In this document: one piece after another, positions 1,152-62,900 of the stretch
Layout: each line of letters starts with the position of its first letter
How positions within the stretch are numbered: the stretch's first letter is position 1
Virus record (IMG/VR): IMGVR_UViG_3300031884_000002
Span: 62,001-126,000 of that record
Length of the DNA stretch: 64,000 bases
Strand: one strand, 5' to 3'
Position numbers and translations under genes: made by a program
Notes under the pieces: generated by a model
What the model was told of the DNA's origin: nothing
Databases searched by the model: none
The model's input: the letters and a program-made list of their open reading frames with translations, nothing else

Positions 1152-1211
1152 TTGTTTTTATTCCAATTATAAATATGTTGTTATTTTTTGATTAAAATCA
1201 CTATATCTCTA

Positions 1212-1219
1212 TATTTATA
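1212..1219 (+). promoter_or_regulatory. TATTTATA putative late-promoter motif (representative)
   Basis: The same octamer precedes starts at 11616, 22919, 31217, 41324, 43376, 52730, 58520 and 63133 (+), and 19611 and 24512 (-). Confidence 0.7.
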
Positions 1220-11532: not shown

Positions 11533-11627
11533 AATTTTAAAAGTATATCAGAGTTTAGATTAAAGTCAATCAAAAAATATTTTCATTTTGTCTGACGTTT
11601 TTTGCTTTGACGTTATATTTATAGTGT

Positions 11628-12812
11628 ATGAATGATGCATCAAAATTAAACCAAAGTCAAGAGAAAGAAGTTATATGGGAAGAAAGAAATTATACAGAAC
11701 CAGAGAAGAATTACTTGAACAGCAACGTGCCAGAGCAAAACGATATTACAACAAAAACAAACAAAGAATATCCGCTGTCAGAATGGCCAATTACTATAAA
11801 GCCAATAAAAAGCGGAATATACAAAATAATAAATAAAATTAATAATAAATATTATGTAGGAAGTGCTAAAAATATAAGAAACAGATGGAAAAAGCACTTT
11901 ACTGATCTAAATACAAATCGACATCCCAACTATCATTTGCAGAGCGCATATAATAAATATGGAAAAGATAGTTTTATTTTTACATTTATAGAAGAAGTCG
12001 AATCTAATAAAAAACTGTTATATAAAGTAGAATATAAATATTTAAGAATTGCTAAAAAAGAAAAACCAAATGTATATAATTTAAGGTTTAAACCGGCTGG
12101 AGGACCAACCGATACATATGGGCGATGGAAAATATCAGAATATAACAAAACAAGAGTATTTACGAAAGAAACAAGAGCAAAAATGTCGGCGGCATTAAAA
12201 AGAAGAAAAGTAACAAACGAAACACGACAAAAACTAAGTGATACTAATAAATTATATTATTCTATACCTGAAAACAGACAAAAACTCATAGAAATGAGTA
12301 AAAAAGTAAATCGGCAGAAAATAGGAATTAAAAATAGAGACAAAACTATATATAAATTTATAAATGTAAATACAGGAGAAATATTCGAAGGAATTAGATA
12401 TGATTTTAGAACAAAATATAACTTAAGGAAAAGCAGTGTTAATGGAGTTATTAAAAAACGAAGAAAGACAGTTAGTGGCTGGAGATTATTTGATAATTCA
12501 TATGTTCCAATTGTCGGAAAAAATAACAAATATAAAAATAAAGAAGAATCAAATTTTTCCAAACGCAAAATTAAAAATAGACCTTCAAAAGAGGAACTTC
12601 TCACAATGATATGGAATAAATCCACAATTCAAATAAGTAATGAGTTTTGCGTGAGCAAAGGAGCAATTAGAAAATGGTGTATAGGATACAATATACCACT
12701 TCCTCCTGTTGGTTATTGGATTAAATTAAAATATGGATATAAAGATGAATGTCTTAAAATAAAAGAAGAACAATTTAAAAAATTTAATCTTGTTTGTAAT
12801 TTTGATTTATAA
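11628..12812 (+). CDS. GIY-YIG homing endonuclease with NUMOD-type repeats
   Basis: SGIYKIINKINNKYYVGSAKNIRNRW and LQSAYNKYG. Confidence 0.92.
   Translation: MNDASKLNQSQEKEVIWEERNYTEPEKNYLNSNVPEQNDITTKTNKEYPLSEWPITIKPIKSGIYKIINKINNKYYVGSAKNIRNRWKKHFTDLNTNRHPNYHLQSAYNKYGKDSFIFTFIEEVESNKKLLYKVEYKYLRIAKKEKPNVYNLRFKPAGGPTDTYGRWKISEYNKTRVFTKETRAKMSAALKRRKVTNETRQKLSDTNKLYYSIPENRQKLIEMSKKVNRQKIGIKNRDKTIYKFINVNTGEIFEGIRYDFRTKYNLRKSSVNGVIKKRRKTVSGWRLFDNSYVPIVGKNNKYKNKEESNFSKRKIKNRPSKEELLTMIWNKSTIQISNEFCVSKGAIRKWCIGYNIPLPPVGYWIKLKYGYKDECLKIKEEQFKKFNLVCNFDL
11675..11836 (+). CDS. overlapping basic peptide MGRKK-1 (53 aa)
   Basis: MGRKKLYRTREELLEQQRARAKRYY...; first 20 aa identical to the paralog at 58580, differing only by synonymous changes. 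Confidence 0.75.
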   Translation: MGRKKLYRTREELLEQQRARAKRYYNKNKQRISAVRMANYYKANKKRNIQNNK

Positions 12813-22838: not shown

Positions 22839-22932
22839 TTTTCAAATTTTAACAGTTATACTCATAAAGTCAAGTAAATATTTTTGGAGTTTTTTCGGTG
22901 TTTTATTATTTTCAATGATATTTATAATGTAT

Positions 22933-23076
22933 ATGGGAAGAAAAAAAATATACATTACAGAGTCCGATAAGATTGCCGCTGCCAGAAAATGGAGAATGAA
23001 TTATTATTGGAAAAACCAAAAAAAAGAGCAAAAACGAAATCTTAAAAACTATTATGAAAGAAAAAGAACCAACTAA
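22933..23076 (+). CDS. basic peptide MGRKK-3 (47 aa) overlapping the HNH start
   Basis: MGRKKIYITESDKIAAARKWRMNYYWKN...; immediately after TATTTATA. Confidence 0.7.
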   Translation: MGRKKIYITESDKIAAARKWRMNYYWKNQKKEQKRNLKNYYERKRTN

Positions 23077-23851
23077 TTATTATAAAAGTTGTCCTAAATG
23101 TAATAAAATAATTTATTATAAACATCCTCAAACGTTACAAAATTCAATACAACATAATTGGAATTGTAGGAAATGTGTATTATTGGAAAGACGAGGACTA
23201 TACACAGAACAAGAAGAACAATTTTTAATAGATAATTATTCTAAACTGGGAAGAGACGAATGTGCTAAACGATTAAACAGAACTACATTTTCAATAGGAG
23301 TAAAAACCAGTAAAATGGGACTTATTATGACCCCACAGCCAAAAGATCCAATAAATAACCAAATATGTGGAAGATGTAATGTAGAATTAAACAAATCACA
23401 TTTTACAAAAGATAAACGACGAATAAATAAAATAGGTATTATGTGTAAAAAATGCATGTGGAAAGATAGACAACGACCCGATAAAAAATTAAACAAAAAG
23501 AAATATGATTTTAAATATAAACACATTAAAAAGAAAAGTCCAATTTTTAAATTAAGATGTAAAGTCAAAAAACGAATAATGGCAGCAATAAAATCCTCAA
23601 AACTTAAAAAGAGACATTCGATCATAGAATTATTGGGATGTTCTATTATAGATTTCCAAAAATATTTACAATCACAATTTAACTCAGGTATGACGTGGGA
23701 AAATTATGGTTTTCGAGGATGGCATATGGATCATAAAATACCATTATCATCCGCAAAAACACAAGAGGAACTCGAAAAACTATTTCATTATACAAATATA
23801 CAACCTCTATGGTGGTATGATAATTTAAGTAAAAAAAATAAAATATTATAA
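23054..23851 (+). CDS. HNH homing endonuclease
   Basis: LLGCS...MTWENYG..GWHMDHKIPL...HYTNIQPLW..DNLSK. Confidence 0.88.
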   Translation: MKEKEPTNYYKSCPKCNKIIYYKHPQTLQNSIQHNWNCRKCVLLERRGLYTEQEEQFLIDNYSKLGRDECAKRLNRTTFSIGVKTSKMGLIMTPQPKDPINNQICGRCNVELNKSHFTKDKRRINKIGIMCKKCMWKDRQRPDKKLNKKKYDFKYKHIKKKSPIFKLRCKVKKRIMAAIKSSKLKKRHSIIELLGCSIIDFQKYLQSQFNSGMTWENYGFRGWHMDHKIPLSSAKTQEELEKLFHYTNIQPLWWYDNLSKKNKIL

Positions 23852-57042: not shown

Positions 57043-58532
57043 GTAAATACTATGGCTTGAGAATATTTATGTTAATAATTTATTCAACAAACTTATCAAC
57101 AAAGGTTAAACATTTATTTTTCCATTCTTCTACATCGGAAAAATCTGGCCCAAACCGTGCTCCATATGATATACTCGTAGGTTCATTGTATAATTCTACA
57201 TTATCTTTCTGAATAATAAGCCTTCCGCTATATCCATCTCCTTCCGAGATAACCATAATATCATATTTATTATCTATTTTATTTTTCCAAATTGTATTCA
57301 TAATCTATTTTACAATTCCATATTCACGTTCAATTCTATTAATTGTAGAATCACATCCACGATTAATTGCTTCAAATGCCCAATATTCTAAAACCTCATC
57401 TGGTAATACGGGATATAACACCGATAATCTTTTTTCTATATCATCTAATGTAGATTTAAGAACAGTATCTCTAATTTTATTATATTCATTAACCTGATAT
57501 TGAAGTTTTAACTTCCATTCATCTCTTAATGATGGAGAGGTTCTGGCTACAATAGTGCCTTCCGTATATTTAGCAATACTCAATAGTATATCATCACTTG
57601 ATATAAAAATATTCTGCTTATCACATACTCTTCTATTTTTTACAATAACATTTCCATCTATTACTATATCAGAAATGCTATGTAATGTTTTATCAGATGC
57701 GGCTTCATTGTGAATTTTTGGATCGTAATTATAATTATGTATAAAATAAAATGTATTCATATTTAATCTCCATCAACTATAGTAGTTTGTTGTTTTGCTT
57801 TAAATCCTACACATTTTCCAGTATCATCAATTTTACAAAGAGAAGGGACCGAACACTTCAATTCTTTATTGAAGAAGCATCCGGTTGCCCTACAGTCAAT
57901 CTCTTCATAATCTCTACTCACCCAAGGATGATGGTAAGAATTATCTCCCTGTCTTCCCATTAAATGGCAAGTATCCATAATAATTAAAACTGTTTACCAT
58001 TGATTGGAATGGTTTGAACTGACTCCTTAGTGCGAATTTTTATTCCGTGTTCCTTTAGTGATTTGGGCTTAATTAATTGAAACAATTCTCCAAGATTAGT
58101 AATTTTATTTTTCTTTTTCTTAGTTAATTCATTCTGAGTTTTAGCCGCATCTCTAAGTCTCTGAAGAACCGTTTCTGCCGGAGTTCCCTCTTTATAGGTT
58201 ACAACAAAGGCATCAAATTCATCTTTAATCTTACCTTCTGGATCGTTAATAAATACAAGATGATTATAGAGTAACTTAGGCAATTTATTAGCTTCTTTTT
58301 CCTCTGCTTCCTCAACAGCTACCGCTTCAAGGTCTTTAATAATTGCTAATATAGTAGGTTCATCTACATTGCGTTCAGTTAATGTTAATTTAATTTGTTC
58401 TATGTCGAATTTTGCCATATATTTTTATTAATTTTTAATTATGTTAAAGTATAACAGAAATATTAAAAATGTCAATAAAAATATTTTCATTTTATATGAC
58501 GTTTTTTAATATGACATTATATTTATACTCGT

Positions 58533-59483
58533 ATGAATGATACATCAAAATTAAACCAAAGTCAAGAGAAAGAAAAAATATGGGAAGAAAAAAGTTATAT
58601 AGAACCAGAGAAGAATTACTCGAACAGCAACGTGCCAGAGGAAATAGATACTATAATAAACACAAAAGAAAAATCAATATTAAAAATATGCGACGATACT
58701 ATAACAAAAAAAAGTGGAATATACAAAATAATAAATAAAACAAATAACAAATACTATATAGGAAGTGCTAAAAATATTAGAATTAGAATTAAATATGGTC
58801 ATTTATGGGCACTAAAATCTAAAAAACACAGAAACAGACATCTTCAAAGAGCATGGAACAAATTTGGAGAAGATAATTTTTATATAATGATTATAGAATA
58901 TGTTCCTATAGAATTATTAAAAATTGTAGAACAAAGATATTTAGATATAGCAAAATCAGAAATAGATAATGTATATAACATACAGTTTATAGCCGATAGA
59001 TTAGAAGTAACTGATTATATGCGAGAATGTGTTAGAGCATCAAATAAAAACAGAGTATGGACAAAGGAATCTCGTAAAAAATTAAGCAAAGTTCATACTG
59101 GGTATAGACATACAGATGAAGCCAAACAAAAAATGAGCGATGCCAATAGAGGTAAAATTATTTCTTTGGAACATAGATTAGCAGTTGGAATTGCGACAAG
59201 AGAACGGATCAAAAAATATGGATCTCCAATGAAAGGAACTCACATGTCCAAGGAAACAAAACAAAAACTTAGTAAATCAAGAACTGGAAAATATAGAGGG
59301 AAGGAAAATCACGCATTTGATAATACTATTTATAATTTTATCCATAACAAAACTGGCGAAATATTTGTAGGAACTAGACACGAATTAAAATTAAAAGCAA
59401 ATCTTTGTATTGATAGTTTATATAAACTAATAAATAATAAAATATTTACTTCCAAAGGTTGGGCATTAATATATCCTATTTAA
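58533..59483 (+). CDS. GIY-YIG homing endonuclease with NUMOD3 repeats
   Basis: SGIYKIINKTNNKYYIGSA; HTDEAKQKMS; N-terminus paralogous to the 11628 gene. Confidence 0.92.
   Translation: MNDTSKLNQSQEKEKIWEEKSYIEPEKNYSNSNVPEEIDTIINTKEKSILKICDDTITKKSGIYKIINKTNNKYYIGSAKNIRIRIKYGHLWALKSKKHRNRHLQRAWNKFGEDNFYIMIIEYVPIELLKIVEQRYLDIAKSEIDNVYNIQFIADRLEVTDYMRECVRASNKNRVWTKESRKKLSKVHTGYRHTDEAKQKMSDANRGKIISLEHRLAVGIATRERIKKYGSPMKGTHMSKETKQKLSKSRTGKYRGKENHAFDNTIYNFIHNKTGEIFVGTRHELKLKANLCIDSLYKLINNKIFTSKGWALIYPI
58580..58738 (+). CDS. overlapping basic peptide MGRKK-2 (52 aa)
   Basis: Same 47-nt offset from the endonuclease ATG as the peptide at 11675. Confidence 0.75.
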   Translation: MGRKKLYRTREELLEQQRARGNRYYNKHKRKINIKNMRRYYNKKKWNIQNNK

Positions 59484-59901
59484 TATTCATCTGTATTAGT
59501 TCAATGTTCCATTCTTTAGCAAGTTGCTTGGTAAGTTCATTGGGGTATTTTTCCATCTCTTCACAATAATATACTTTCGATATTTGTTTATAACCAATAA
59601 TTTTAATACATTCGGGACAAGGTAAATGAGTAACTGCTAAAAACTCAACTTCATATGGTAATATTCTATTTAATACATTGGCTTCTCCGTGAACTACTCG
59701 TTTTCTTCGTTCATCTCTATCTGACCAATCTATATCATGTTTAGGTAATGCTCCATTATATCCCAATGCAAAATCATTTCCATTCTTTTTTAAAGCACAT
59801 GCACCTACTTGAACGTAAGGGTCTTCACTTCTATATTTGGCAATATCATATGCCAGACGCAGACAAGTTTCTTCCCAAGATAATCGGGGTCTTCCATTCA
59901 T
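59476..59901 (-). CDS. dCMP deaminase
   Basis: RSEDP..QVGAC, GYNG, HGEAN and PCPEC. Confidence 0.92.
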   Translation of the reverse strand: MNGRPRLSWEETCLRLAYDIAKYRSEDPYVQVGACALKKNGNDFALGYNGALPKHDIDWSDRDERRKRVVHGEANVLNRILPYEVEFLAVTHLPCPECIKIIGYKQISKVYYCEEMEKYPNELTKQLAKEWNIELIQMNIK

Positions 59902-62900
59902 ATAATTTCTTCAATAGTAATTTTATATTTTTTAGTCGTATTAAAAGGTAGTAATCCATAATATTTCATTTCCACAAATCCTTTTTCTCCATACCCAGAA
60001 ATTAAAGTATTAGGACTATGTACAATATCAAAATAATATAACCCCGTATAAAAAAAAGGTTCTTCAGTAGAAGGTATATTATGAGAAACTGAAGTTAGCA
60101 TAATGTCAAATGATACTGGTTTAAACACAATAGGATGTTCTATTGGTATTTCTTTATACATTGGTTCTAATTTAGATATAACTTTATCATATGGAACATA
60201 TTCTATAGTATTAACATTAGAAATAACATTTACCAAAAAATGTTTATTATCATTTCCGGTATTAGTATCGCCTATAATTCCTTTGCGTTTTATACCCAAA
60301 ATACTATTGTATTCTATACTATCGTTTATTTTTAATTCATTTATTTTCATAATATTGTCAAGTCCAGAGTATATTCCTATGAGTTACTAACCAAATCATG
60401 TATTCAGTATCAGTATCATATATCAATTTTTCCAGCCGATTGGTTTCTCCATATAATTCTTCATATTTTTTCTTGGCGTCATCAGGATTATTATATTGAA
60501 GAGGAAATCCTTTGGATATATCAAATGGAGGATATGAGTCATCTAATTTTTTCTGCATTTCGGCTCTGCCGGTTTTAGCCCAATTATATATTTTAATAAT
60601 TGCTTCTTTTTCAGATTTAAGATTATCCCATCCTATTACATTTAAAGCATCTTCGCCTTCAATATAATCAATTATACCGGCAAATAAAACATTCTCATAA
60701 ATTGTGTCAAGATCTAACCATCTATTACTTATTGACTTCTTAACCCACTTATTTCTAGGGTTAAGCCAACACCTAATTCCATATGATATATCTCGATAGA
60801 AATAAGGACATAAAATAGTATATTTATCTTGTAATTTATTCCAGAGTTTCATTTTAATCGTTTCAGTAATTCTTGTTTTAATTCTAATACTTTATTATCA
60901 TATATTCTAAATCCACCTGAATTATTACAGGCATCTTTCGCAGAATAATCTACCCATCTTGTATATAAATCTAATAATTGTTCGTTAGTTACCAATTCGT
61001 TGACTACCCGCTTTATACCATTATAACCCATGGATTTTTGGAATATTCTATCACTTTTAATCTTTTTCTGTCTTTTTAAGTTTTCTAATGCCAAATCCTT
61101 CATCACTTCAATTGGAAGTTCGTATTTTTTACATCGGTGAGGAGCATCATTATCATTTACTAAAATCCATTTAGTTTTATATTTTCCCCATCGGACATGA
61201 GTAGTTCCACATCCTTTACATTTAGGATTTTCAATATAGTGGGGATATGAATAATAATCATCAACCCACATACTATCTGCGTCCATATCGGCTATATCAC
61301 CCATTTTTTAAGTTTAACATATTTGACTCAAATGTCAATTTAATTTGACATGTAGATTAAACCTGCTATATTGAGAATATGAAATTAACCGGCAAACTTT
61401 TAGAAAAATATTTGGAGAATCCAAATGGAATGGACGAAGAAGTGAGAGAAGCATTGAAATTGCCAGATAATAGATATTATTCCATTGTTACATGGAGTAT
61501 AAATGAAGCATCAATTGGAAATGTATATGTGTCTAGGGTAGAACGAGTTGTTAAAAATAAAAAAGTTTCAAAATCAGACCAGAAAAGTAATCCTTGACTT
61601 ACAATCTTAAAACTGTATAATATGTGGCTATGTGGAAAAGAATAATAACCGATATGCCGCCTGAAAATACAAGAATTATTATATCAGATGGAGCAACCAT
61701 TGCCATTTGCCGTTATATATTGGGAAATGAGTGTATTCATTGGTTGTTTGATTCTGAATCATTTTCAGACATTAAAATAATTTATTGGATGGAATTGCCA
61801 AAACTTCCACCTGAAATTAAACAAATATCGGCGGAAATATAATTTATGTATAACCTAATTAGCACTACTAAACCAAATGCAAAAAAAGAATATGATTGTA
61901 TTTGGTGTTCTGAAAAAATCCTAAAAGGAGAACAACACGTAAAAGAAGTCGGTGAATATCAAGGAGATTTTCAAAGTAATCGCTGGCACCAAGAATGTCA
62001 TAACGCCGCTCAATTATATTTCGAGGAAAGTAATGAAAATGAGTTCACTCCACATAATAATGAACGTGGTTCAAAAAAAGAAAAAATCCTAGATGTAAAA
62101 CCAGTATATATAAATAAAATGATAGATAGATTGACTAAAATCGTATCATTTGAAATGAATCCTAATGAATCTAAAAGATATTTCAATTTAGTAGATAGAC
62201 ATAGAGCAGTTTGTAACGCATATTCATTTAAAATATTATTCTCACCAAATGGAATAGGAACCGGAGTTCAAATTATTTGTGGAACTTGTGATGTTAAATG
62301 GGATATAACCGATTATGATAGTTGGTAATTTATGAATATTGAAACCATAAAAATAAGCGATGACGTTTCAATTGAAATATGTCATGGACACTGGACCAAA
62401 ATAATATACGAAATACCAGAAGATTACGAAGACCAAAGTTGTGAGTTTCCAATTTCAATTGAAGAACTTAGAATTTTAAAAAAATATTTAAACTCCAGAA
62501 CCGATTTATGAAATTAGTATTAACATACGATATATCGGACCACTGTACTTATTCATATCCAAATCATATTCCATTTGAATATGAATCAAAAGAAAAGGCG
62601 GAATATGATTTATATGAAGAGTGGCAACGAATTGGAAGAGAATTAGTCATGTATTCCAAATGGGAAGAAAAGTGTCCCAGCACATCTTCTAAACAAGAAA
62701 AATGGAAAGCGTGGGATAAAATGAAACCCAACGTTAATTTAAATATTAAATTGGGAACAATTAAAGAATTGGACGTTAATGATTTTACAATATATCAATC
62801 TTTGTCCAATAAACCACGAGAATACAATGAGCCAAAAATCATGACCTTGGATGAATGGTTTAATTATTATAAAGAATAATATGACAGAAAAAGATACAAA

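Follow-up and report, generated by a model that had tools for sequence, protein, structure and literature searches.

The window analysed here is a stretch of 64,000 nucleotides (positions 62,001 to 126,000 of IMG/VR record IMGVR_UViG_3300031884_000002) and is part of a 354-kb freshwater jumbo-phage record. It contains three cassettes in which a short ORF for a basic peptide beginning with MGRKK is found at the start of, or just upstream of, a predicted nuclease gene. The features of these cassettes, in window coordinates, are as follows.

11593..11613 (+): direct repeat (X box) of cassette 1, TGACGT twice with a period of 15 nt; the second copy abuts the -10-like motif
11614..11623 (+): TATATTTATA promoter (-10-like) motif of cassette 1
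11628..12812 (+): GIY-YIG/NUMOD3 homing-endonuclease ORF (394 aa), with its ATG 5 nt after the promoter motif; codons 1-61 are a stop-free spacer that overlaps the peptide gene
11675..11836 (+): MGRKK peptide gene (53 aa), nested in the -1 frame relative to the nuclease (equivalently, the nuclease is in frame +1 of the peptide)
11811..12059 (+): GIY-YIG catalytic domain of the 394-aa ORF
58494..58515 (+): direct repeat (X box) of cassette 2, ATATGAC twice with a period of 15 nt
58518..58527 (+): TATATTTATA promoter motif of cassette 2
58533..59483 (+): GIY-YIG/NUMOD3 homing-endonuclease ORF (316 aa), with its ATG 6 nt after the promoter motif
58580..58738 (+): MGRKK peptide gene (52 aa), nested in the nuclease ORF
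22918..22926 (+): -10-like ATATTTATA motif of cassette 3, followed at once by ATG-TAT-ATG, the second ATG being the MGRKK start
22933..23076 (+): MGRKK peptide gene (47 aa from the MGRKK ATG; the ORF listing starts it at 22915) in a conventional arrangement
23054..23851 (+): EndoVII/HNH-like nuclease gene (265 aa) with its own ATG at +121, in frame +1, overlapping the peptide gene by 23 nt

The nuclease assignments were made by profile searches. Both GIY-YIG ORFs match PF01541 (E=2.4e-11 and 4e-07), and NUMOD3 was matched at E=1.3e-11; in the 394-aa ORF the GIY-YIG match covers residues 62–144 and starts at profile position 2. Both genes are free-standing and lie on the strand opposite their neighbours, consistent with GIY-YIG homing endonucleases, although cleavage activity is inferred from sequence alone. 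The third nuclease matches PHROG 1035, endonuclease VII (E=4.4e-13). In cassette 1, the catalytic domain begins where the conserved 44-residue part of the peptide ends (window 11806), and the last 8 codons of the peptide and its stop overlap the first codons of the domain.

In the preliminary description, three basic ORFs were said to overlap two GIY-YIG genes and one HNH gene with the nuclease in frame +1, and all four substitutions in the first 20 peptide codons of the GIY-YIG copies were said to be synonymous in the peptide frame but to change residues in the nuclease frame. This observation is confirmed. All three ORFs and their frames are as described, and codons 1–20 of the two GIY-YIG copies differ at exactly four positions (codons 4, 5, 7 and 14), each change being synonymous in the peptide frame and non-synonymous in the nuclease frame. 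One qualification is that the third copy is not overprinted on the HNH 5' end in the same way, since its +1 frame has a stop inside the peptide ORF and the HNH gene has its own start. An assembly error is ruled out, as sixteen lake-water DNA runs contain window 58300–59600 at 100% of sampled words.

The arrangement is far more general than the window alone reveals. The phage carries 10–11 copies of the MGRKK ORF, and the 11 paralogs align without gaps over 44 aa. Mean pairwise amino-acid identity is 0.45 in the peptide frame (frame 0), against 0.31 and 0.35 in the other two frames. Homologs (E<=1e-3) form at least 413 clusters at 50% identity, nearly all of 44–60 aa with the domain at residues 1–44, and the ORF length (45–57 codons) and ATG are conserved in more than 400 clusters. 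No Pfam or PHROG family matches the peptide, and every source name is "hypothetical" or a spurious label. A tblastn search of GenBank phages gave no match, although a 44-aa query has little power in that database. AlphaFold2 (AF2) predicts a single basic helix with pLDDT 93, over residues 10–52 in the 53-aa peptide of cassette 1, following an extended MGRKK N-terminus.

If the nuclease frame is read through the overlap, it is expected to be kept free of stops. In 8 copies in this genome and in 45 non-redundant loci from other viral contigs, a 200–390-aa nuclease ORF follows in frame +1, and no long overlap uses frame +2. In the 8 genome copies whose nuclease lacks a start next to its domain, frame +1 has 0 stops across the peptide ORF (joint probability about 3e-11 under synonymous resampling), whereas the 3 copies without such an overlap (two whose downstream nuclease has its own ATG, and one stand-alone) have 5, 1 and 5 stops, as expected. 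In the 45 external loci, 11 stops were seen against 80.5 expected, and 36 loci are stop-free against 4.9 expected; these loci are related to each other, so the p-values overstate independence. Codon choice follows the same pattern. Leu6 before an A-starting codon is CTT/CTC in 31/31 loci that are open from upstream, and TTA or CTA is used there only in loci whose frame +1 opens after the peptide ATG, while Arg after Met37 is CGA/CGT in 9/9 cases and never AGA. Exclusive use of frame +1 also follows from the fact that frame +2 cannot be kept open (P=0 in simulation).

Selection at the amino-acid level was assessed by classifying substitutions in both frames. Changes that are synonymous in the peptide frame and non-synonymous in the nuclease frame occur at 2.57 times expectation, and the reverse class occurs at 0.80 times; changes synonymous in the peptide frame are at 2.57–3.69 times expectation. 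These results show purifying selection on the peptide frame only; the preliminary description had proposed that selection acts on the hidden frame.

Each of two independently translated frames is expected to have its own start codon. The peptide ATG is invariant. The nuclease frame always has its own ATG, which lies either 4–8 nt after a TATATTTAT promoter motif or at +31/+40. The -10-like motif, TATATTTATA in cassettes 1 and 2, occurs 116 times in the genome, and about 30 long non-cassette ORFs start 4–8 nt after it, whereas only 20/255 long ORFs have a Shine-Dalgarno-like motif. Loci without an upstream frame +1 ATG have one at +19 to +43 in 15/16 cases, against 5/23 of the others (Fisher p=1e-5), so that the two positions are complementary. 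The 5' regions are unstructured (z +0.2 to +1.6), except that a stable hairpin covers the AUG of the third window copy (z = -3.2). However, the peptide ATG has no consistent Shine-Dalgarno motif where it lies downstream of the nuclease ATG, and its internal initiation is left unexplained.

The same promoter-plus-peptide module precedes GIY-YIG, EndoVII/HNH-like and Vsr-like nucleases, and the element is a portable module shared by unrelated nuclease families, namely GIY-YIG, LEM-3-like GIY-YIG, SegE-like, HNH_3/EndoVII-like, DUF559/Vsr-like and DUF723/treble-clef proteins. Downstream ORFs include 24 GIY-YIG, 3 DUF559/Vsr, 1 HNH_3 and DUF723/DUF4379. One module class (TTTCAC box, EQSNxRSKRYY peptide) precedes GIY-YIG, NUMOD3-only and DUF723-type proteins, the last being treble-clef zinc-finger proteins with a Vsr-like tail by alignment. 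In marine phages, the element also precedes a DNA methyltransferase. A few relatives are in-frame fusions to the same nucleases (locus L020 and relatives P0022 and P0053). YYxxNKxxI repeat arrays are visible by eye in downstream ORFs but were not significantly detected by an HMM of the peptide. A search for empty sites through RNA-ligase neighbours found eight loci, none of which kept the flanking 152-aa gene, and assembly of reads from four DNA runs gave only fragmentary contigs with nothing on slippage or empty sites.

Direct repeats of at least 5 nt, as in the X boxes, occur in 28/42 cassettes, 5/30 other promoters of this phage and 19% of shuffles. Their period is 14–15 nt. The box sequence differs between cassettes, but both copies within a cassette match and change together (CACG/CACG in locus L032 versus CATG/CATG in locus L075). 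This suggests, but does not show, that the peptide is an operator-binding regulator, and the link could reflect physical linkage rather than recognition. Furthermore, the marine 60-aa subfamily sits inside an operon, with no TATATTTAT-type motif or direct repeat evident in the 120 nt upstream of it, so a promoter-binding role cannot be universal.

Taken together, we favour, with moderate confidence, true dual coding with two independent starts. In this view, the MGRKK ORF is a real gene for a small protein of about 45–55 aa that lies out of frame inside the first ~150 nt of free-standing homing-endonuclease genes, and both frames would be translated from their own ATGs close to the 5' end of a short-leader or leaderless transcript made from the common TATATTTAT promoter of the phage. 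In one class (class A), which includes both GIY-YIG copies in the window, the first ATG after the promoter opens the nuclease frame and the peptide ATG lies 11–77 nt further on. In the other (class B), the first ATG is that of the peptide and the nuclease frame starts at an ATG at +31 or +40. The first 45–60 nuclease codons would be only a stop-free spacer, with amino-acid selection acting on the peptide, and the frame would always be +1 because only that frame of this Lys/Arg/Glu-rich ORF can be kept free of stops by synonymous codon choice. Promoter, two starts and peptide ORF would together form a portable 5' module that recombines in front of unrelated nucleases. The geometry, the selection on the peptide frame, the stop avoidance and start codons in the nuclease frame, and the portability are established by the analysis, whereas translation of both frames and leaderless transcription rest on comparative inference, and the role of the peptide is inferred. 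Our best guess on that role, at lower confidence, is that the peptide binds DNA and recognises the cassette-specific direct repeats that flank the promoter, setting when or how much nuclease is made, as a separate protein in most cassettes and as an N-terminal fusion in a few.

The interpretation in the preliminary description, a portable regulatory module acting as a repressor or inhibitor peptide, through translational coupling or through a +1 frameshift fusion at the A-runs, is thus only partly supported: portability and selection on the hidden frame hold, and a repressor or regulator role is compatible with the repeats, but frameshifting is not supported as the main mechanism. Programmed +1 frameshifting, or transcriptional slippage that removes one A, would join the MGRKK domain to the nuclease, with the short peptide as the non-shifted product. 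This is suggested by the constant +1 relation, by a nuclease domain that starts right after the peptide domain without an adjacent ATG, by A-runs at some junctions (A5 at window ~11800, A8 at window ~58700 and in genome copy 4), and by in-frame fusions with matching junctions (locus L022 versus genome copy 8, L020 versus L027/L068, and P0022 and P0053). However, a frameshift needs only a short overlap, yet frame +1 is cleared of stops over the whole peptide ORF, far upstream of any junction A-run and from as early as codon 6. The nuclease frame always carries its own ATG, the junctions share no slippery motif or stimulator, and L022 differs from copy 8 by a 4-nt indel rather than by A-run length. 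Early slippage at the MGRKK A-run (ATGGGAAGAAAAAAA) was rejected, since copies 1, 7, 8 and 9 lack the run and some loci have frame +1 stops at +16 to +37, and a shift at the peptide stop (AAA-TAA-A) was rejected because it would delete the GIY strand in the GIY-YIG copies. Frameshifting is therefore considered unlikely, although the fusions and A-runs leave room for a minor frameshifted product.

An antidote or inhibitor that binds the nuclease, made from the same mRNA to keep the ratio fixed, also appears improbable. The peptide is always co-encoded with a DNA-cutting or DNA-modifying enzyme, nesting guarantees joint expression, and the peptide ORF stays intact beside decayed nuclease ORFs (genome copy 3, with a +1 ORF of only 75 aa, and locus L017, with one of 86 aa). 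But the partners have unrelated folds (GIY-YIG, HNH/EndoVII-like, Vsr-like PD-(D/E)xK, a methyltransferase), making a common protein interface unlikely, the only shared nuclease-frame segment is the unconstrained spacer, fusions place the domain on the nuclease itself, and a very basic single helix looks more like a nucleic-acid binder. Least likely is that the peptide frame is untranslated and conserved through a promoter-proximal element, an mRNA structure or a recombination hotspot. The first 15 nt (ATGGGAAGAAAAAAA) are conserved even at synonymous sites, and paralogous cassettes could homogenise their 5' ends by gene conversion (copies 1 and 2 are 87% identical over 431 aligned columns, including upstream DNA), but divergent members keep the amino-acid pattern while the nucleotides change, the length and ATG of the ORF are conserved, no RNA structure is present apart from the hairpin of the third window copy, and the domain also occurs in frame within longer proteins and as a conventional stand-alone gene with a Shine-Dalgarno-led downstream gene. 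A eukaryotic giant virus with leaky scanning was rejected, since the genome encodes tail sheath, baseplate-like and terminase-like ORFs and is an IMG/VR phage record.

Nested genes are already represented in phages by lambda Rz/Rz1 and the phiX174 overlapping genes, in which a complete small gene lies out of frame inside another (Rz1 is in the +1 frame of Rz), each with its own start, and both products are made. Those pairs are fixed parts of one pathway (lysis, morphogenesis) in one lineage, whereas here the nested gene sits at the extreme 5' end next to the promoter, overlaps an unconstrained spacer, and is portable across unrelated nuclease genes and hundreds of viral contigs. OrfA/OrfAB of IS1 and IS3-family elements likewise combine a small basic N-terminal DNA-binding protein, thought to regulate, with a catalytic ORF in another frame, and in-frame fused relatives exist. 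They use -1 frameshifting at A6G/A7 motifs, with a short overlap and no independent start for orfB, whereas here the frame is +1, the overlap spans the whole small ORF, the nuclease frame has its own ATG, and no common slippery site exists. Controller proteins of restriction-modification systems (e.g. C.PvuII, C.AhdI) are encoded immediately upstream of, and overlapping, a nuclease gene with repeated operator boxes at their own promoter, and the C.PvuII transcript is leaderless. They are helix-turn-helix dimers of 80–100 aa that bind palindromic C-boxes, with a short overlap; the MGRKK peptide is a predicted single helix of about 50 aa without an HTH family hit, and its putative operator repeats are direct, so it does not qualify as a C protein. 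No Pfam bZIP hit was found at E<=0.1–1, although a single long helix with a basic N-terminal half is compatible with that type. Among free-standing phage homing endonucleases, I-TevI binds an operator overlapping its own promoter, and T4 seg/mob genes are under hairpin control (reviewed in PMC2988022). In T4 the regulator is the nuclease's own C-terminal DNA-binding domain or an RNA hairpin, and no separate nested protein is known; here only the third window copy has a hairpin over its AUG.

A more far-reaching possibility, which remains tentative, is that each cassette carries a private switch, in which a roughly 50-residue single-helix DNA binder, encoded inside the nuclease's own 5' end, co-evolves with a pair of direct-repeat operator boxes in its promoter. 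The ten or so cassettes in one phage genome would then be regulated independently of each other, and the promoter-operator-peptide unit would be a plug-in module that can tame any DNA-cutting or DNA-modifying gene placed behind it in frame +1. This would be a new, minimal class of sequence-specific DNA-binding protein, offering a very small scaffold with many natural variants of differing specificity.

These results reveal a family that gene callers and curated libraries miss, although it is present about ten times in one phage and in hundreds of metagenomic clusters. A whole protein gene is nested in the start of mobile nuclease genes under a simple rule (always +1, stop-free, two ATGs), which bears on the annotation of overlapping genes in phages. 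The arrangement also gives a case for studying how leaderless mRNAs choose between start codons, and is relevant to how phages express and restrain selfish nucleases.

The 353,772-bp IMG/VR virus record, of which the window covers bases 62001-126000, has a G+C content of 30.5%, and its long ORFs include proteins that, read by eye, look like tail sheath, baseplate and large terminase. It is therefore a jumbo phage, and bacterial translation rules apply. Window 58300-59600 is present at 100% of sampled words in sixteen lake-water DNA runs, which indicates that the source is freshwater and that the sequence is not a one-off assembly error. In one 2023 freshwater metagenome (run X17), a contig joins window position 58796 to 59590 with 24 other letters in between (depth 6.9), which may represent a variant or relative lacking most of the second GIY-YIG gene, or a mapping artefact from a paralog.

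The three MGRKK ORFs and their nuclease partners are as set out in the preliminary description, and its observation is confirmed:

11675-11836 (+), MGRKK peptide ORF, inside the 394-aa nuclease ORF 11628-12812 (+)
58580-58738 (+), MGRKK peptide ORF, inside the 316-aa nuclease ORF 58533-59483 (+)
22933-23076 (+), MGRKK peptide ORF, overlapping the 265-aa nuclease ORF 23054-23851 (+)

Pfam places a GIY-YIG domain at residues 62-144 of the first nuclease and 61-128 of the second, with NUMOD3 motifs, whereas the third nuclease matches PHROG 1035, endonuclease VII. Between the two GIY-YIG copies, peptide codons 1-20 differ at four positions, and all four changes are synonymous for the peptide and non-synonymous for the nuclease frame. 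The third copy differs in kind, since its frame +1 has a stop inside the peptide ORF, the nuclease starts at its own ATG at +121, and the overlap is only 23 nt.

To determine how widespread the peptide is, the phage's own genome was searched, which gave 12 matches, and a profile search confirmed 10 strong copies and one divergent copy. These align without gaps over 44 residues, with the pattern MGRKK[LI]x.T.EE...A.R.....YY..NK..I...RM..Y[WY], and their mean pairwise amino-acid identity is 0.45 in the peptide frame, against 0.31 and 0.35 in the other two frames. A profile search of 1.84 billion representative proteins found 413 clusters at E<=1e-3, nearly all of 44-60 aa with the domain at residues 1-44. 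Neither Pfam nor PHROGs has a family for the peptide, the ESM Atlas lists only "hypothetical" clusters, and the source names are "hypothetical" or spurious. A full-text literature search for MGRKK and for overlapping ORFs in homing endonucleases found nothing relevant. AlphaFold2, run with a 109-sequence alignment, predicts one continuous helix over residues 10-52 at a mean pLDDT of 93. Four proteins of 230-270 aa (P0016, P0114, P0136 and P0142) start with MGR[KP]KLY.T.EE... and carry a second copy of the same motif. Two of them, P0016 and P0136, carry source names as hypothetical proteins of the mushroom-forming fungi Candolleomyces eurysporus and Coprinellus micaceus. Thus, going by these source names, the helix module is not confined to phages.

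The frame relation between peptide and nuclease is general. In 8 of the genome's copies the downstream domain is in frame +1 and has no ATG next to it, and frame +1 is open through the entire peptide ORF. In 62 loci from other viral contigs (48 non-redundant; loci carry L numbers here), a 200-390-aa ORF follows in frame +1, and in almost all of them it is open from upstream or from no later than +40. No locus has a long overlap in frame +2, and the one +2 case (genome copy 9) is a conventional ATGA start-stop overlap. Among 43 external loci, the downstream proteins were 24 GIY-YIG, 2 LEM-3-like GIY-YIG, 1 SegE-like, 23 with NUMOD3, 3 DUF559/Vsr, 1 HNH_3, and DUF723/DUF4379 zinc-ribbon types. 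Genome copies 4, 6 and 10 form an EndoVII/HNH-like group by BLAST clustering. In genome copy 3 (genome 135275-135502, minus strand; L003:1477-1704), the peptide ORF is intact and frame +1 is still open, but the nuclease ORF stops after 75 aa and continues in another frame, so that it looks like a decayed endonuclease beside a preserved peptide gene. L017, L043 and L091 look similar.

To assess which frame is under selection, we compared 42 locus pairs with 2-30 nucleotide differences over the first 126 nt and classed every difference by its effect in each frame.

Table. Nucleotide differences by effect in peptide frame / nuclease frame, observed relative to expected.
Synonymous / non-synonymous: 2.57x
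Synonymous / synonymous: 3.69x
Non-synonymous / synonymous: 0.80x
Non-synonymous / non-synonymous: 0.69x

The peptide is under purifying selection, and the overlapped part of the nuclease shows essentially none at the amino-acid level. The nuclease frame is nevertheless kept open. When synonymous codons were resampled using the genome's own codon usage, the eight nested copies should carry 0.5-4.7 stops each in frame +1, yet all have none (joint P about 3e-11). The three copies without such an overlap (two with a downstream nuclease that has its own ATG, one stand-alone) have 5, 1 and 5 stops, as expected. In 45 external loci, 11 stops were observed against 80.5 expected, and 36 loci are stop-free against 4.9 expected. 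Codon choices show how this is achieved. Leu6 followed by an A-starting codon is CTT or CTC in 31/31 loci that are open from upstream, although TTA is the commonest Leu codon overall, and Arg after Met37 is CGA or CGT in 9/9 cases and never AGA, which would create TGA in frame +1. Frame +2 cannot be opened for this amino-acid composition (P=0 in every simulation), which explains the exclusive use of +1 without invoking a frameshift mechanism.

We next examined where the two frames start. The promoter (-10-like) motif TATATTTAT occurs 116 times in the genome, and about 30 long non-cassette ORFs begin at an ATG 4-8 nt after it (for example at window 1210-1218, genome 63210, and at genome 215575, 227004 and 142514, the last three on the minus strand). 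Some of these promoters also carry a perfect TTGACA 16-17 nt upstream. Only 20 of 255 long ORFs have a Shine-Dalgarno-like motif. This phage therefore appears to use short-leader or leaderless transcripts widely, although this is inferred from motif spacing alone. In both GIY-YIG cassettes of the window, the ATG at the canonical distance (5 and 6 nt) is the nuclease-frame ATG, at 11628 and 58533. Across all loci there are two classes. In class A, the first ATG after the motif is in the nuclease frame, and the peptide ATG lies 11-77 nt further on; in class B, the first ATG is the peptide's own, and a nuclease-frame ATG lies at +31 or +40. The two positions are complementary, since a frame +1 ATG lies between +19 and +43 in 15/16 class B loci, against 5/23 class A loci (Fisher p=1e-5). 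The 5' regions of class A transcripts are less structured than shuffled controls (z +0.2 to +1.6). In contrast, the 5' end of the third window cassette (22927-23039) folds into a stable predicted hairpin that pairs AUGUAUAU, just before and into the MGRKK start, with AUAUACAU (-17 kcal/mol, z = -3.2). The other cassettes are unstructured, and the hairpin may be a translational control particular to this copy. Taken together, the start-codon positions and the lack of structure favour two independent initiations on one short 5' region.

A +1 frameshift fusion, one of the options raised in the preliminary description, is ranked lower. A fusion mechanism needs only a short overlap, and does not explain stop avoidance from codon 6 onward or the complementary ATGs. 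The junctions share no slippery motif, the in-frame relative L022 differs from genome copy 8 by a 4-nt indel and not by A-run length, and shifting at the peptide's stop would remove the GIY strand. However, in-frame fusions do exist. L020 is fused to the same zinc-ribbon/Vsr-like nuclease that is in frame +1 in L027 and L068, the protein P0022 is fused to an EndoVII-like nuclease and sits after TATAAT plus 5 nt, and the protein P0053 is fused to a GIY-YIG/NUMOD3/HNH-associated protein. A minor fusion product from the A8 run at window ~58700 cannot be excluded, and contigs from DNA reads say nothing on this point. Thus, the frameshift option is disfavoured rather than ruled out.

The promoter, both starts and the peptide ORF travel together. 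One class, with a TTTCAC box and an EQSNxRSKRYY peptide, precedes several unrelated proteins: GIY-YIG (L045, L046), a NUMOD3-only protein (L033), a DUF723/treble-clef protein whose C-terminus aligns with a Vsr-like tail (L068), and an unclassified protein (genome copy 5). All three window cassettes are on the + strand between genes on the - strand, and the P0022 cassette likewise lies on the strand opposite to its neighbours, which fits free-standing mobile insertions. The 3' end of each window nuclease ORF overlaps the 3' end of a convergent gene: over 12784-12812 an RNA-ligase-like ORF, over 59476-59483 a dCMP-deaminase-like ORF, and over 23846-23851 a 127-aa ORF.

The cassette promoters contain a direct repeat with a 14-15-nt period, and the second copy abuts the -10-like motif. 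An exact repeat of at least 5 nt occurs in 28/42 cassettes, against 5/30 other promoters of this phage and 19% of shuffles. One promoter outside the cassettes (genome 352163, minus strand) also has a direct repeat (TCCAC twice, period 16 nt) before TATATTTAT, with the ATG of a 269-aa ORF 5 nt later. The repeated sequence differs between cassettes, including the ten in this genome, but both copies within a cassette match. Related cassettes show the same change in both copies, as in CACG/CACG in L032 versus CATG/CATG in L075, and TTGTAGT twice in copy 7 versus (T/A)TAGAGT twice in copy 8. A variable site that is kept duplicated implies a cassette-specific partner. Because the module moves between nucleases, that partner should be encoded within the module, and the peptide is the only candidate. 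Box classes track peptide residues 19-23.

Table. Peptide motif and promoter box.
RAKRYY: TGAC
RSKRYY: T(T/C)CAC
RDxRYY: GTCG
RNKRYY: CAGTC

Physical linkage could produce the same pattern, so this is a lead and not a result. A role as a DNA-binding domain, which is likewise inferred, fits two further observations. In-frame fusions to nucleases exist, and arrays of YYxxNKxxI-like units, seen by eye, occur in the EndoVII-like nucleases of copies 4 and 6, L021 and L028. The EndoVII/HNH-like nucleases behind some cassettes (L004:1601-2430, L006:690-1538, L021, L028 and L043) begin with long tandem arrays of a ~17-aa unit (Y..NKEKI......Y) that resembles the C-terminal half of the peptide, although Pfam, PHROGs and an HMM of the peptide do not detect these arrays. 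One observation argues against a universal promoter-binding role. A 60-aa marine MGRKK subfamily ending in LYGDQ (L093-L098, 3001-3183), listed in 212 blocks of the collection searched, including Tara marine data, always sits between a FEN-like 5'-3' exonuclease and an N6/N4 DNA methyltransferase, in a gp32-UvsX-FEN-[peptide]-methyltransferase-DnaB operon. There frame +1 has stops, and the methyltransferase has its own Shine-Dalgarno-led ATG.

The interpretation in the preliminary description is thus supported in part. Its reading of a portable module shared by unrelated endonuclease families is borne out by the loci examined, whereas the regulatory function it proposed is plausible but unproven. 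The open nuclease frame, the selection on the peptide frame and the movement of the module between nucleases rest on the sequence comparisons, while leaderless transcription, initiation at both starts, and any DNA binding or regulation by the peptide are inferred.

The geometry resembles that of nested phage genes such as lambda Rz/Rz1, the logic resembles IS OrfA/OrfAB and the controller proteins of restriction-modification systems, and the inferred purpose resembles I-TevI autorepression. No description of this arrangement was found in the searchable literature. It differs from Rz/Rz1, from OrfA/OrfAB, from the controller proteins and from I-TevI autorepression in that a whole conserved small gene is nested at the 5' end of the host gene, the overlapped part of the host gene is an unconstrained spacer, and the unit is portable across unrelated nuclease folds.
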